Sequence record: NC_048045.1
Length of the DNA stretch: 64,000 bases
Strand: one strand, 5' to 3'
Position 1 is the first letter of the stretch, and each line of letters begins with the position of its first letter. The position numbers and the translations under genes are program-made. The notes below the pieces were generated by a model. The model was not told the DNA's origin, ran no database searches, and saw nothing but the letters and a program-made list of their open reading frames with translations. Of this stretch, positions 37,633-41,145 are shown piece by piece.

Positions 37633-37671
37633 AGGCAAAAAGAAACCGCCGACCCGAGGGCCGGCGGTTTT
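37633..37671 (-). terminator. Intrinsic terminator
   Basis: AAACCGCCG..CGGCGGTTT stem followed by CTTTTT. Confidence 0.8.
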
Positions 37672-37690: not shown

Positions 37691-39553
37691 CTAGACGTCG
37701 AGGATGAAGTAGCGCTCGCTGGACGGGCCGTCGACTTCAACGACAAAGCCCGCCGCCTTCAGGGCCTCGATTGCCTTGGCGGTGTGGTAGAGCGACAGCG
37801 AGGACGCTTCGCTGATCCGGGACAGCGAGAAGCCATGCTCGGCGATCTTGAGGTCTTGCAGCGACAGTTCGTTCAGGGTGGTGATCACCACGCCGGCCGG
37901 GGCCAGTTCGTAGGCGCCCTCGAAATCGCGATCCTCCGAGAGGCGCACAAGGCCCTCCTGCTCGATGTTGTCCATCAGCGCGGCCAGGAACTCCGGATCG
38001 ACGTACCCGACGTGGCTGCGGATTTCGCTCAGATAGGCCGGGCCGTCGATGTCGACGGCATTGAGCACCGCCAGCAGGGCGATGCCCGGCATGACCGCGA
38101 CGACTTGCTCGGCCTTCTCCTCCTCGGACAGTTCGACCGGGATGCCGGCGCCGCGCGACAGCGGGATCACGGCCTCGTCCGGGTGCGTCTCGATATAGGC
38201 CTTGATCGCCCGCAGCGCGGACAGGAAGTGCGCCTGGGGGATTTCGTCCAGCTTGAACGTGATGCAGTCATCGTCGGTCAGGGGGTAGTGGGCGCGCAGG
38301 TTGGCGACGATGTCTTCGGGCCAAGCCTCCAGCACCGCGTCCCACAAAGCCTTGGGCATGTGGAAGGCGCCGAAGGACAGGGACTGCTCGGGCGTGGCGC
38401 TTTCGACGGCGGCGATGGACTCGTCGATGCTGGCGGCGCTGTAGCCGCCGACATAGCCGTTTTGCGACGCGTGGAGGACCTCGGCGGCCTCCTCGGCGCT
38501 CAGCCCCGTGATGGTCTTCTCCACGGCGTCCTCGGGCTCCTGGAGCGGCTCCAGGGTCTTCAGCCGATCGCTCAGGCCCTGGATGGACTCGTAGGCTTCG
38601 GCCGCGTCAACGTCGAGCTTCAGCGTCAAGCGCTCCGGCCGGGCGCTGAACTCCTCGCCCGTGATGGTGTAGGCGCCGTCGCGCTCCAGGATTTCCAGGT
38701 TCAGGAAACGCCCAGTGTCGTTGAGGGCGCGGAAGCGCGCATAGAGCGCGTCCTGCTCGATCAGATCGGTGAAGATGCCCTTGTCGAGCGCGAACAGCAG
38801 GTCACCGTAGGACCGCAACGCCTCGCCTTCGACGAAGGGCGCGCTCTCCTCGGGCTGCTCCCGCGTGAAGCGTAGGCCCGGCCCGGTGGTTTCGGTCTCT
38901 TGCGGCTTGATGAGGGGTTCTTCGATCACGGGGGCTTTCTCCTTGAAGATGATGGAGGTCAGTTCGTTCAGCGAAACCGACCAGTTGGTGTCGACCTGGG
39001 CGGCATAGCGGCCGGAAAGGTCGTTCCATTCGACCTTGCCGATCTCACCGCTGAGCATCTTGCTGTCCCAGGCCGAAGGGAACGTGACGTCGGCGCCGCC
39101 GAAGAAGTCGGTCAGGTGCCCCGCGAAGGCCTCGATGTCCTCGCGGGTCGCCGGGCGCACTTCACGCAGCGGGTAGGAGTGATGGACGCCGGGCCGCGCG
39201 TCTTCGATCTCGACGAAGATCGGCCCGTGCTCGGTGTGGAAGCGCTGGGTGTAGCCGATCATCTCGCCTTGGGGGGTCATGACCATCACCGGTAGGGCCG
39301 AGAACTTGTGGTTCAGCCGATCCACATAGTCGCTCGGATAGGCGGTGGTCGTGTAGATCAGGTTGTCGCCGCGCCGCACGCCGCTGTAGTCGATCACGCA
39401 GAGGGGCACGGCGGTGCCCGGCGGCAGGCGCGGGCGGTCGACGAAGACCTGACCATCGGCCACCGGCGGGGACGATCCATGGATATAGGGGAGCACCTCG
39501 CTGAAGGTGGCGGTCCAGGCGGGCTTGACCCGGTCGAGGAAAGTTTCGGTCAA
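37691..39553 (-). CDS. Large acidic hypothetical protein with possible tandem winged helices at the C-terminus
   Basis: 620 aa; ALMDNIEQEGLVRL..YELAPAG and AKAIEALKAAGFVVEV. Confidence 0.8.
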   Translation of the reverse strand: MTETFLDRVKPAWTATFSEVLPYIHGSSPPVADGQVFVDRPRLPPGTAVPLCVIDYSGVRRGDNLIYTTTAYPSDYVDRLNHKFSALPVMVMTPQGEMIGYTQRFHTEHGPIFVEIEDARPGVHHSYPLREVRPATREDIEAFAGHLTDFFGGADVTFPSAWDSKMLSGEIGKVEWNDLSGRYAAQVDTNWSVSLNELTSIIFKEKAPVIEEPLIKPQETETTGPGLRFTREQPEESAPFVEGEALRSYGDLLFALDKGIFTDLIEQDALYARFRALNDTGRFLNLEILERDGAYTITGEEFSARPERLTLKLDVDAAEAYESIQGLSDRLKTLEPLQEPEDAVEKTITGLSAEEAAEVLHASQNGYVGGYSAASIDESIAAVESATPEQSLSFGAFHMPKALWDAVLEAWPEDIVANLRAHYPLTDDDCITFKLDEIPQAHFLSALRAIKAYIETHPDEAVIPLSRGAGIPVELSEEEKAEQVVAVMPGIALLAVLNAVDIDGPAYLSEIRSHVGYVDPEFLAALMDNIEQEGLVRLSEDRDFEGAYELAPAGVVITTLNELSLQDLKIAEHGFSLSRISEASSLSLYHTAKAIEALKAAGFVVEVDGPSSERYFILDV

Positions 39554-39562
39554 GGTGGTCCC

Positions 39563-40027
39563 CTATTCGCTCGGAATGACGGACGCCGGGGCGTCCAGGT
39601 CGAAGGTCTCGCCCTCATCGGTGAGGGCGAAGGTGGCGTAGCCGTCAGGGCTCTTGACCATGGACAGCATCTTGATCAGGCCGTGCTTCTCCAGCGCCTG
39701 GGCGGCGGGATAGTCGGCGTGCTGGTAGAAGACGTTGAGCCGCCCGCCGTTACCCAGGATGCGCACGCTGCGCAGCAACATGGCCTCTTGCTCGCTCAAG
39801 CCCAGCGTACCCTTGATCCGCACGCGGGCCAGATGCACGTCGATCACATGCGTTTGGCCCTCATGCTCGAACTCGATGATCGCCAGCGGCCCGAACGAGC
39901 CGTTGGTCACCGCCAGGATCACGCCCTCGAACTCGGTCGTCTTGCGGGCGGTGATCGGGACGTAGTAGTCGAAGAACACGGTCTTGCCCTTCATCACGTG
40001 GTGGGCCTGGGGCGCGACAGTGCTCAT
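39563..40027 (-). CDS. Hypothetical protein, possible C-terminal winged helix
   Basis: AQALEKHGLIKM..FALTDEG. Confidence 0.7.
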   Translation of the reverse strand: MSTVAPQAHHVMKGKTVFFDYYVPITARKTTEFEGVILAVTNGSFGPLAIIEFEHEGQTHVIDVHLARVRIKGTLGLSEQEAMLLRSVRILGNGGRLNVFYQHADYPAAQALEKHGLIKMLSMVKSPDGYATFALTDEGETFDLDAPASVIPSE

Positions 40028-40275
40028 GTTGTGGAGTCCTTCTTGCGGGCGGTGTAGTGGAACTCGTCGTGCATGCGCCCGTCCAAGGTGATCTCGTAGC
40101 CGGGACCCAGTTCAGCCAGGATGCGCGCCTCGATCTCGGCGAAGTCGATGTTGGCCATCGCACGCTCGGCCGCCGCCGCCTGCTCCAGAAAGCTGCTCCT
40201 GATCTTGGCGCCGGCCTCGGTACGGATCGGGATGTTCTGGATGGGTGGCTCGGACTTGGACAGGCGCTCGGTCAT
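40024..40275 (-). CDS. Small protein (83 aa) carrying DNA polymerase A motif A- and C-like peptides
   Basis: ANIDFAEIEARILAELG and GRMHDEFHY; start MTERLS coupled to the gcrA stop. Confidence 0.7.
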   Translation of the reverse strand: MTERLSKSEPPIQNIPIRTEAGAKIRSSFLEQAAAAERAMANIDFAEIEARILAELGPGYEITLDGRMHDEFHYTARKKDSTT

Positions 40276-40820
40276 CAAGCCCTCTTTTTCTTGCCGACGT
40301 GCGAGGGGCGCGTGGCGGCCTTGTAGACGAATGGGCGATAGGCCATGCGGTGGTGGTCGATGCAGTAGACGCCCTGCGCGGTGCGGCACCCGCAATGGCC
40401 GAAGTTCTGGTCGGTCGGGTCGCCGTAGGGCCAGCGGCACATCCCGCGCCCCAGGCTCAGGGTGGGGACGACAGTCTCGGGACGCACCGGGATCGGCGCC
40501 TGCCCCTCGGGGACCAGTTCGATCTTGGGCTTCGAAGGCGTTTCGGCCTTGGGCTTGGCGGCTTTCTTGGGCTTGGCGACCTTGACCTTCTTGATCTGGA
40601 TGCCGTAGCCGCGCGTTTTCTTGCGGCGCTCCTGGAGCGGCAAGACCTTGTCGCCCAGTTCGCCCTTCTGGCGCAGGCGATCGCCCATGCCGCAGACGGC
40701 GCTCTTGCTGCGCGGCTCGCGTAGCATTTCCCCGATCTGCTTGGTCCCGACAGGCTCGGCCCAGAGCTTCTTGAGCAGGGCGATGTCCTCGGCCAGCCAG
40801 TCCGACTTACGCTTCTTCAC
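40275..40820 (-). CDS. gcrA: GcrA-like cell-cycle regulator
   Basis: W..EDIALLKKLWAE...QIGEML..SKSAVCG..RL; CRWPYGDP..FGHCG...YCIDHHRMAY. Confidence 0.92.
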   Translation of the reverse strand: MKKRKSDWLAEDIALLKKLWAEPVGTKQIGEMLREPRSKSAVCGMGDRLRQKGELGDKVLPLQERRKKTRGYGIQIKKVKVAKPKKAAKPKAETPSKPKIELVPEGQAPIPVRPETVVPTLSLGRGMCRWPYGDPTDQNFGHCGCRTAQGVYCIDHHRMAYRPFVYKAATRPSHVGKKKRA

Positions 40821-40828
40821 CTTGAACG

Positions 40829-41014
40829 CTACTCCTGTTTTGCCTTGGCGGGGCGCCGGCGGCTCGTGGGATGGGGGACGAACACCAGGGCGACGGTCGA
40901 GCCGCCGGTGTAAAAGGTCCGGCGGCTATAGAGCCAACCGCCCTCGACTTCCAGGCGATCGGTGACTTGCCCGTCCGCTTCGTCGACTTTTTCCCATTTC
41001 GTCTTCTTGGCCAT
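40829..41014 (-). CDS. Hypothetical protein (61 aa)
   Basis: Start MAKKTK; TDRLEVEGGWLY..ALVFVP. Confidence 0.7.
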   Translation of the reverse strand: MAKKTKWEKVDEADGQVTDRLEVEGGWLYSRRTFYTGGSTVALVFVPHPTSRRRPAKAKQE

Positions 41015-41017
41015 GTG

Positions 41018-41065
41018 CCCCTCGAAATTCGCCGGCACCCTAGAGACGCGCCGATGTGTTGACAA
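41018..41065 (-). promoter_or_regulatory. Leftward promoter of the divergent region (gcrA operon)
   Basis: TTGTCA-N17-TAGGGT; GAGGGG RBS. Confidence 0.55.
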
Positions 41066-41079
41066 GCGCAAAATAGCTC

Positions 41080-41145
41080 TGGCTGGCGAGTGTTGACAAG
41101 GAGGCGGTGGTCCCTTAGAAGGGCGGCGACGACAACGAAAGGAGG
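41080..41145 (+). promoter_or_regulatory. Phage promoter family member (first rightward)
   Basis: TGGCT-N6-TGTTGACA-N17-TAGAAG-N6-GACGACAAC-GGAGG. Confidence 0.85.

Follow-up and report, generated by a model that had tools for sequence, protein, structure and literature searches.

A Pol I palm-fragment protein encoded beside a gcrA-like gene in phiCbK-like Caulobacter phages

Among the phiCbK-like phages of Caulobacter, a truncated EF-Ts has been described in CcrColossus (PMC3556154). The phiCbK genome paper also treats a homologue of GcrA and a T7-like replicative polymerase, and is silent on a small PolA-like gene that neighbours the GcrA homologue (PMC3556154). Here, we analyse this small gene in Caulobacter phage CcrBL10 (genus Poindextervirus), within a stretch of 64,000 nucleotides of sequence record NC_048045.1 (hereafter the window; positions in the record equal positions in the window plus 124,000). 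The 4.5 kb surrounding the gene are 100% identical to CcrBL10. The gene encodes a protein of 83 residues, referred to below as mini-PolA, which resembles a short part of family A DNA polymerase I (Pol I). Both mini-PolA and the truncated EF-Ts are phage-borne pieces of a host housekeeping protein for which host modulation is proposed, but they are different proteins from different phages, and the EF-Ts case is likewise an annotation-level proposal.

RefSeq names the product of HOT99_gp194 ‘DNA polymerase’, and the same annotation is attached to PHROG 12116, the mini-PolA family, to which the protein aligns with E=3.8e-49 (residues 1-80 on positions 1-80 of the 81-position profile, C-terminal tail included). 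The phiCbK orthologue, gp221, carries the annotation ‘putative Pol I DNA polymerase, palm domain’. gp221 and its orthologues are 75-94% identical to the CcrBL10 protein, occupy the same slot between a gcrA-like and a hypothetical gene, and do not differ from it in any essential respect; its annotation rests on similarity only. Databases already contain the gene and record its PolA similarity. New in this analysis are evidence for selection, the strict linkage to gcrA, a tail that can be read in more than one way, a structure prediction that is not palm-like and the sporadic recurrence of such fragments in other phages.

Compared with Pol I (PF00476; TIGR00593 / NF004397), which has about 900 residues, mini-PolA shares the TGRLSS strand, the PNLQNIPxR loop and motif A with its Asp and Glu, but is without the 5’-3’ and 3’-5’ exonuclease domains, the thumb, the fingers with motif B and the rest of the palm; its possession of motif C is uncertain. 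Lacking all of these parts, it cannot polymerise DNA. The RefSeq name ‘DNA polymerase’ is misleading for an 83-residue protein, which would be described more accurately as a ‘Pol I palm-fragment protein’.

A Pol I segment and its conservation

The Pfam model DNA_pol_A matches mini-PolA with 47.1 bits (E=2.1e-12), exceeding the gathering score of 34.3, and aligns residues 2-57 with profile positions 118-171, thereby covering 54 of its 381 positions. In a phmmer search of the PDB, the same residues are colinear, without rearrangement, with Pol I of mycobacteria, Taq, Bst and Klenow. Our own PolA hidden Markov model gives 60 bits, and the NCBIfam Pol I model (889 columns) places the segment at positions 627-679 with 48.5 bits, far short of the 720 set as the equivalog cut-off. 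HMMER, Pfam and NCBIfam all end the homology at residue 57-59. A first-pass annotation, made from the sequence alone, had pointed out the resemblance to motif A, and the Pfam E-value together with the colinear PDB alignment indicates that this resemblance is true family A homology. The same annotation had described the protein as just motif A plus motif C. This description misses the strongest part of the match, since the bulk of the PolA similarity lies N-terminal of motif A, in residues 2-29 (ERLSKSEPPIQNIPIRTEAG..I..F), which it did not mention.

Within this N-terminal part, ERLSKSEPPIQNIPIRTEAG corresponds to TGRLSS.PNLQNIPIRTEAG of PolA, and the equivalent of the PNLQNIPxR loop reads PPIQNIPIRTEAG, with P10, Q13, N14, I15, P16, R18, T19 and G22 invariant among the minis and PolAs compared. 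In PolA, this loop contacts the primer strand, and the segment as a whole sits between the thumb and the fingers of Pol I in the established Klenow and Taq structures. Motif A of mini-PolA is IDFAEIEARILAEL; its IDFAEIEAR aligns with the family A consensus D-[YF]-S-Q-I-E-L-R, D44 falling on the position of the catalytic Asp and E49 on that of the steric-gate Glu, and D44, E49 and R51 are invariant. All bacterial matches were Pol I, with about 50% identity over residues 2-56 and every PolA-invariant position kept, and the LAE signature that follows motif A is present in several alphaproteobacterial sequences. No sequence resembling motif B or the O-helix of the fingers (R..K...F...YG) was found; merely 26 residues follow motif A. 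Judged by these alignments, residues 1-57 descend from an internal palm piece of a bacterial-type Pol I, and mini-PolA consists of one contiguous Pol I segment to which a tail of 26 residues is attached.

The phage encodes a T7-like DNA polymerase of its own (CcrBL10 gp299; phiCbK gp123), which is also of family A. Pairwise similarity between gp299 and mini-PolA is undetectable beyond a 10-residue match at chance level, and gp299 is a complete polymerase in which motifs A, B and C are all present. Thus, mini-PolA is neither a duplicate of the phage polymerase nor a missing part that complements a defective one in trans. Joint capture of gcrA and polA from one host locus was likewise considered and rejected: in 80 bacterial loci, a set in which Caulobacter’s own polA is not included, no gcrA-like sequence was present within about 3 kb of the PolA match. 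No further PolA remnants were found in any frame of the window.

mini-PolA is full-length in 26 phage records, all of them from Caulobacter phiCbK-like phages. The gcrA-like gene is present in the same records (26/26), always adjacent, with mini-PolA directly downstream; nine of the loci were read. The start codon of mini-PolA overlaps the gcrA-like stop codon (TGATG), its stop codon overlaps the start codon of the next gene (ATGA), and a Shine-Dalgarno-like sequence precedes its ATG. Between the three clades of the family, mini-PolA retains 72-78% amino acid identity with a ratio of non-synonymous to synonymous substitution rates (dN/dS) of 0.28-0.32 at a dS of 0.5-0.6, and residues 1-57 taken separately give a dN/dS of 0.19-0.34. 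The corresponding values are 61-66% identity and 0.47-0.65 for the gcrA-like gene, and 38-45% and 0.6-1.07 for the downstream gene, gp195. mini-PolA is the best-conserved gene of its operon. By these sequence criteria, it is a real, translated-looking gene under purifying selection in phiCbK-like phages, and the earlier view of it as intact, coupled to gcrA and not decayed is borne out by the TGATG overlap, the 26 full-length records and a dN/dS below those of both neighbours.

These values bear directly on the possibility that a piece of host polA was captured and persists as a functionless remnant, its frame kept open merely for the translational coupling of downstream genes. Overlapping stop and start codons at both gene ends would suit such a remnant, as would a fragment far too small for an enzyme and the lack of a structural match (see below). 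However, at similar dS, mini-PolA is more constrained at the amino acid level than either of its neighbours, which speaks against both a relic in decay and a frame that serves only as a spacer for coupling; the PolA-invariant residues are kept despite only about 50% identity to any Pol I; and the same segment is kept as a free-standing open reading frame (ORF) in independent phage-like contigs. We therefore regard a functionless remnant as very unlikely. The sequence comparisons show a conserved, selected, PolA-derived protein that is incapable of acting as a polymerase.

The C-terminal tail and the question of motif C

The tail begins where the Pol I homology ends, and GRMHDEF starts nine residues past L56. 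H69, D70 and E71 are invariant in the nine orthologues inspected, which represent three clades, and the DGRxHDE block is invariant in six of its seven columns, compared with 38% invariant columns for the tail as a whole. GYEITL, by contrast, is not conserved, the other clades having GYEASF and DYEITA. The first-pass annotation had reasoned that free variation of the motif residues among homologues would speak against it; no such variation was observed, both DGRxHDE and the motif A residues being invariant.

We scored possible assignments of the tail on a profile of 79 bacterial PolA sequences (324 columns). Firstly, BLAST, phmmer and MAFFT sometimes extend the alignment into the tail as a colinear continuation of PolA (..D..L..AF..G.DIH..TA), an assignment that we rejected because its profile score is at chance level (p=0.63). 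Secondly, against motif C (QVHDELVFEV), the tail scores 23-29 half-bits, which beats 99.5% of shuffles when that segment is searched alone (p=0.005). Over the whole profile, shuffled tails reach best scores with a mean of 22.7 and a standard deviation of 3.7, and on that scale the motif C scores are ordinary. Thirdly, the best match of the tail over the whole profile is to the strand TGRIHTSFNQT, which lies just before TGRLSS, with 32-37 half-bits. Whole-profile shuffles give p values of 0.003-0.023 for single sequences, none of 1000 column shuffles reaches the score of the three-sequence average, and 0.5% of real 27-residue segments equal the score of the tail at this strand. A comparison by hhalign pairs 19 ungapped columns of the tail with it (P=0.009). 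HMMER puts the tail of three variants on the TGRIHTSFNQT strand and gives a weak motif C match for two variants. The two readings are mutually exclusive because both use the residues R-[MVI]-H-D-E-F, and the evidence from these scores is suggestive for each and compelling for neither. The identification of HDE with motif C is not established: the residues are invariant and the segment-limited score is favourable, but over the whole profile the match lies near the null mean and another PolA strand fits better. More generally, a short triplet that looks catalytic, as HDE does in this tail of 26 residues, can fit several polymerase sites about equally well and should be read with caution.

We also modelled mini-PolA with AlphaFold2 (AF2), using an input alignment of the three phage clades and 23 PolA segments trimmed to the homologous part. 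The model has a predicted local distance difference test score (pLDDT) of 71.5 and a predicted template modelling score (pTM) of 0.34. It comprises a low-confidence coil (residues 1-19), two helices (20-41 and 45-56) and a hairpin (60-68/71-78) with H69-D70 at the turn; the strand that bears the motif A Asp in Pol I is rendered as a helix. Foldseek against the PDB returned nothing below E=2.7 and no PolA for this model, and BFVD returned only an orthologue, which superposes poorly on it (template modelling score, TM, 0.30). The claim that the protein is a palm mimic finds no structural support in this predicted helix-helix-hairpin arrangement, for which Foldseek gave no polymerase match, although a model of such low certainty does not exclude that the protein becomes palm-like when bound to a partner.

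The first-pass annotation had seen in these features a minimal palm. According to this proposal, two in-frame deletions removed the fingers and joined motif A to a GYxxTLxGR strand and the motif C hairpin with its HDE, so that the carboxylates D44, E49, D70 and E71 would be displayed on an 83-residue mimic of the Pol I palm acting as decoy or inhibitor. In established PolA structures, motif C forms a hairpin with its HD at the turn, and the predicted tail hairpin, with H69-D70 at its turn, resembles it. The invariance of HDE and of the DGR before it, the position of D65-E71 as the best-conserved block of the tail, a pattern of HDE-hydrophobic-x-aromatic that suits motif C, the score on the motif C segment alone and the weak HMMER matches in two variants all argue in the same direction. 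Set against them are motif C scores close to the shuffled-tail mean, the better fit of the identical residues to another PolA strand, the loss of GYEITL in other clades, a motif A strand modelled as helical with no palm retrieved by Foldseek, and the absence of the tail from other mini-PolAs (see below). Moreover, with three clades and 38% of tail columns invariant, three invariant residues are weak evidence. On balance, a minimal palm appears improbable to us.

The better match suggests a different origin, by circular permutation. The tail (P58..A76) would derive from the PolA strand P..V.P.TGRIHTSFNQT.TA, which directly precedes TGRLSS in Pol I; a tandem duplication of a PolA fragment of about 80 codons, followed by trimming, could have placed it at the C-terminus, where it and the N-terminal strand would restore the pairing of the parental β-hairpin. 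The pairing of DGRMHDEFHYTA with TGRIHTSFNQTI is the best that the tail finds in the 324-column profile, and the shuffling results, the 19 ungapped hhalign columns and the HMMER placement of three variants agree with it. However, the match was found post hoc, so that p values near 0.005 are merely suggestive; neither a DNA-level repeat nor another PolA remnant is present beside the gene; in the AF2 model, the tail is paired internally and not with the N-terminus; and the history required is more complex than that of a simple fragment. We consider a circular permutation doubtful, if somewhat less so than a minimal palm. It concerns origin and fold, and is compatible with a function as a binding module.

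An exact 14-nt direct repeat is present at 39940-39953 and 40041-40054 of the window, encoding TARK both in the mini-PolA tail and in the N-terminal part of gp195. In phiCbK, both sites read ..R(Q)KVE.., the CcrRogue sites are not identical at the DNA level, and the motif is absent from the gp195 orthologue of BL57. This repeat is probably a coincidence of codon usage.

Operon context and fragments in other contigs

A promoter match and a strong terminator-like hairpin enclose five minus-strand genes, gp192, the gcrA-like gene, mini-PolA, gp195 and gp196 (Table 1). The phage GcrA-like protein scores 79.7 bits against the NCBIfam GcrA model, for which the equivalog cut-off is 280; because the score is so far below this cut-off, we take the protein, on sequence grounds, as a distant relative of GcrA and not a faithful copy. 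The C-terminal half of gp195 is predicted, with fair confidence, to be winged-helix-like: for its residues 79-141 (pLDDT 70-88), Foldseek gives weak matches to winged-helix regulators of the MarR, PadR and HxlR types, with E values of 0.03-0.2. PADLOC, whose models cover known and candidate anti-phage defence proteins, returned no match for mini-PolA, for its operon neighbours or for the minis of contigs L094 and L095 described below. In the divergent intergenic region, two copies of CTTGTCAACAC lie 33 nt apart on the minus strand (41057-41101), the first overlapping the promoter-like -35 hexamer; this pair may be a phage early-promoter or operator element.

Table 1 Features of the mini-PolA locus (window positions) and PolA-fragment ORFs in other contigs (contig positions; L094 to L098 are our contig labels).
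Feature	Coordinates	Strand	Basis or source
mini-PolA coding sequence, 83 aa + stop	40024..40275	-	CcrBL10 HOT99_gp194; phiCbK gp221 orthologue; PHROG 12116
Pol I-colinear segment, residues 2-57, TGRLSS strand to helix after motif A	40105..40272	-	Pfam, PDB phmmer, own PolA HMM, NCBIfam
PNLQNIPxR loop equivalent, residues 10-22	40210..40248	-	comparison of minis and PolAs
Motif A, residues 43-56	40108..40149	-	Pfam, PDB phmmer, PolA alignment
Lineage-specific tail, residues 58-83, predicted β-hairpin (60-68, 71-78)	40027..40104	-	profile comparisons, AF2
DGRMHDE, residues 65-71, best-conserved tail block, motif C of the first-pass annotation	40063..40083	-	orthologue alignment
GAGGG, Shine-Dalgarno-like, 5 nt before ATG, inside gcrA-like 3’ end	40280..40284	-	sequence
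gcrA-like gene, 181 aa, stop overlaps mini-PolA start	40275..40820	-	Pfam GcrA 2.7e-20; NCBIfam GcrA 3e-22
gp195, downstream gene, 154 aa, start overlaps mini-PolA stop (ATGA)	39563..40027	-	ORF, structure prediction, Foldseek
gp196, large hypothetical protein, last operon gene	37691..39463	-	RefSeq annotation, PHROG search
gp192, small hypothetical protein, 61 aa, first operon gene	40829..41014	-	RefSeq annotation, PHROG search
Sigma-70-like promoter match, divergent intergenic region upstream of operon	41070..41099	-	sequence match
Intrinsic-terminator-like hairpin just past gp196, 12-bp stem, 8 GC pairs, T-run	37643..37670	-	sequence match
L094 mini, 53 aa, PolA loop + motif A only	L094:2995-3156	+	IMGVR_UViG_3300046660_000219, viral contig, 205,908 bp, GC 53%
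L095/L096 mini, 78 aa (P0021)	L095:1422-1658, L096:1021-1257	+	Logan metagenome contigs, GC 72-74%
L097 fragment ORF, 60 aa, near-canonical PolA, overlapped by Dam-type methyltransferase gene	L097:43-225	+	
L098 fusion, 201 aa, ~115 unknown residues + PolA fragment (RIHSSFNQT..DIHTA)	L098:2135-2740	+	

An exhaustive search of 1.84 billion representatives returned the phiCbK family alone, as one cluster, at E<1e-10, and a wider-family search among short proteins gave three clusters, all of phiCbK-like proteins. A profile search retrieved 2225 short PolA-like proteins, mostly near-canonical Pol I sequences that are frameshifted or truncated; judged from these sequences, most are assembly or pseudogene artefacts. 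A few diverged ORFs, those of contigs L094 to L098, carry the same PolA segment as the phiCbK minis in similarly tightly packed, phage-like gene rows. In all of them, the PolA segment begins within a few residues of TGRLSS, and P, QNIP, R, T, G, F, D, E and R are retained. The L094 ORF (..TPHIQNIPIRTEAGRKIKEAF..STDYSALERRL) ends six residues past the motif A Glu and has neighbour genes unrelated to those of CcrBL10. The L095/L096 mini has the derived PPIQNIP and DFA..EARI features in common with the phiCbK family and ends in an unrelated Arg-rich tail; its stop codon overlaps a ParB-N-like gene, which is followed by a helicase gene. The minis of L094 and L095 score higher against PHROG 12116 than against the PolA PHROG. 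The L097 and L098 ORFs, which are close to canonical Pol I, may be recent fragments. Unlike the phiCbK minis, none of these ORFs has a DGRxHDE tail or a gcrA-like neighbour (no gcrA-like sequence was found near the other phage minis), and GC content and neighbour genes are unrelated. Since the other minis are without the tail, the shared core is the loop before motif A together with motif A.

Directly upstream of the PolA fragment, two of these contigs carry a gene with a sub-threshold match to a sigma-70 domain (L095:800-1414 (+), Sigma70_r2, E=5e-4; L098:1611-2123 (+), Sigma70_r4, E=7e-3). We did not accept these genes as sigma factors: the Pfam matches are sub-threshold only, the PDB sequence search was empty and PHROGs were silent. 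A recurrent link of PolA fragments with transcription-initiation factors, sigma-like in these contigs and GcrA-like in the phiCbK family, is a possible lead from gene order and not a finding.

This lead raises the possibility that mini-PolA is a binding partner or modulator of the GcrA-like sigma-70 cofactor of the phage. In a broader form of this idea, PolA fragments and sigma-like factors may be paired, much as an anti-sigma gene follows its ECF sigma gene. Consistent with such a partner are the adjacency of the two genes with a 1-nt overlap in 26/26 records, the sub-threshold sigma-70 matches in two unrelated contigs and the winged-helix-like protein encoded in the same operon. On the other hand, the sigma matches fall below Pfam thresholds and have no backing from the PDB sequence search or from PHROGs, the upstream proteins are dissimilar to one another, and the contexts of L094 and L097 are without a sigma-like gene. 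Furthermore, we know of no precedent for a Pol I fragment that binds sigma or GcrA. We judge a GcrA or sigma partner to be unlikely.

A possible role in binding

We conclude that mini-PolA is a small protein of PolA descent without catalytic activity, which probably acts through binding. The general explanation that we favour, with some reserve, is that a fragment of Pol I was exapted as a small binding module that keeps those residues of the active-site floor which in Pol I contact DNA and metal. In favour of it are the identity and origin of residues 2-57, the signs of selection, the expression signals, the linkage to the gcrA-like gene, the recurrence of the segment in other contigs and the winged-helix-like domain of gp195. 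It would be made in a fixed ratio with the GcrA-like sigma-70 cofactor, from a single operon of predicted DNA-binding regulators. According to the mechanism we prefer, mini-PolA would occupy the ligand of this Pol I surface, be it the primer, a 3’ terminus or a partner that recognises the surface, and would in this way modulate host DNA transactions during takeover. Besides DNA 3’ ends and partners of Pol I, the transcription factor itself is a candidate target. The DGRxHDE tail would be a lineage-specific β-hairpin that stabilises or extends the PolA module.

Several observations weigh against this explanation. The AF2 model is only moderately confident, renders the most conserved stretch (residues 1-19) as coil and bears no likeness to the PolA palm; its disagreement with the BFVD model of the orthologue leaves the isolated fold undefined. 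The conservation statistics are thin, as they rest on three diverged clades only. Also, the PolA-invariant residues could persist through local folding constraints instead of ligand binding.

The fragments found in other contigs invite a wider proposal, which we consider rather doubtful: that phages repeatedly carve out a Pol I palm segment of about 55 residues, comprising the primer-contact loop and motif A, as a free-standing microprotein that mimics a Pol I surface. Such a protein might act as a cap or competitor at DNA 3’ termini, as a decoy for a factor that recognises Pol I, or as a partner of transcription factors of the sigma or GcrA type, and phiCbK-like phages would have added to it a hairpin with carboxylates that may rebuild a metal site.

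If mini-PolA is functional, it would illustrate how a phage can make a small regulator or competitor out of part of a replication enzyme of its host. Through its tight link to a homologue of a cell-cycle regulator, it would also be a second, so far unstudied player in the takeover that phiCbK-like phages are proposed to achieve by means of GcrA, in a host that is a model organism with easy genetics.

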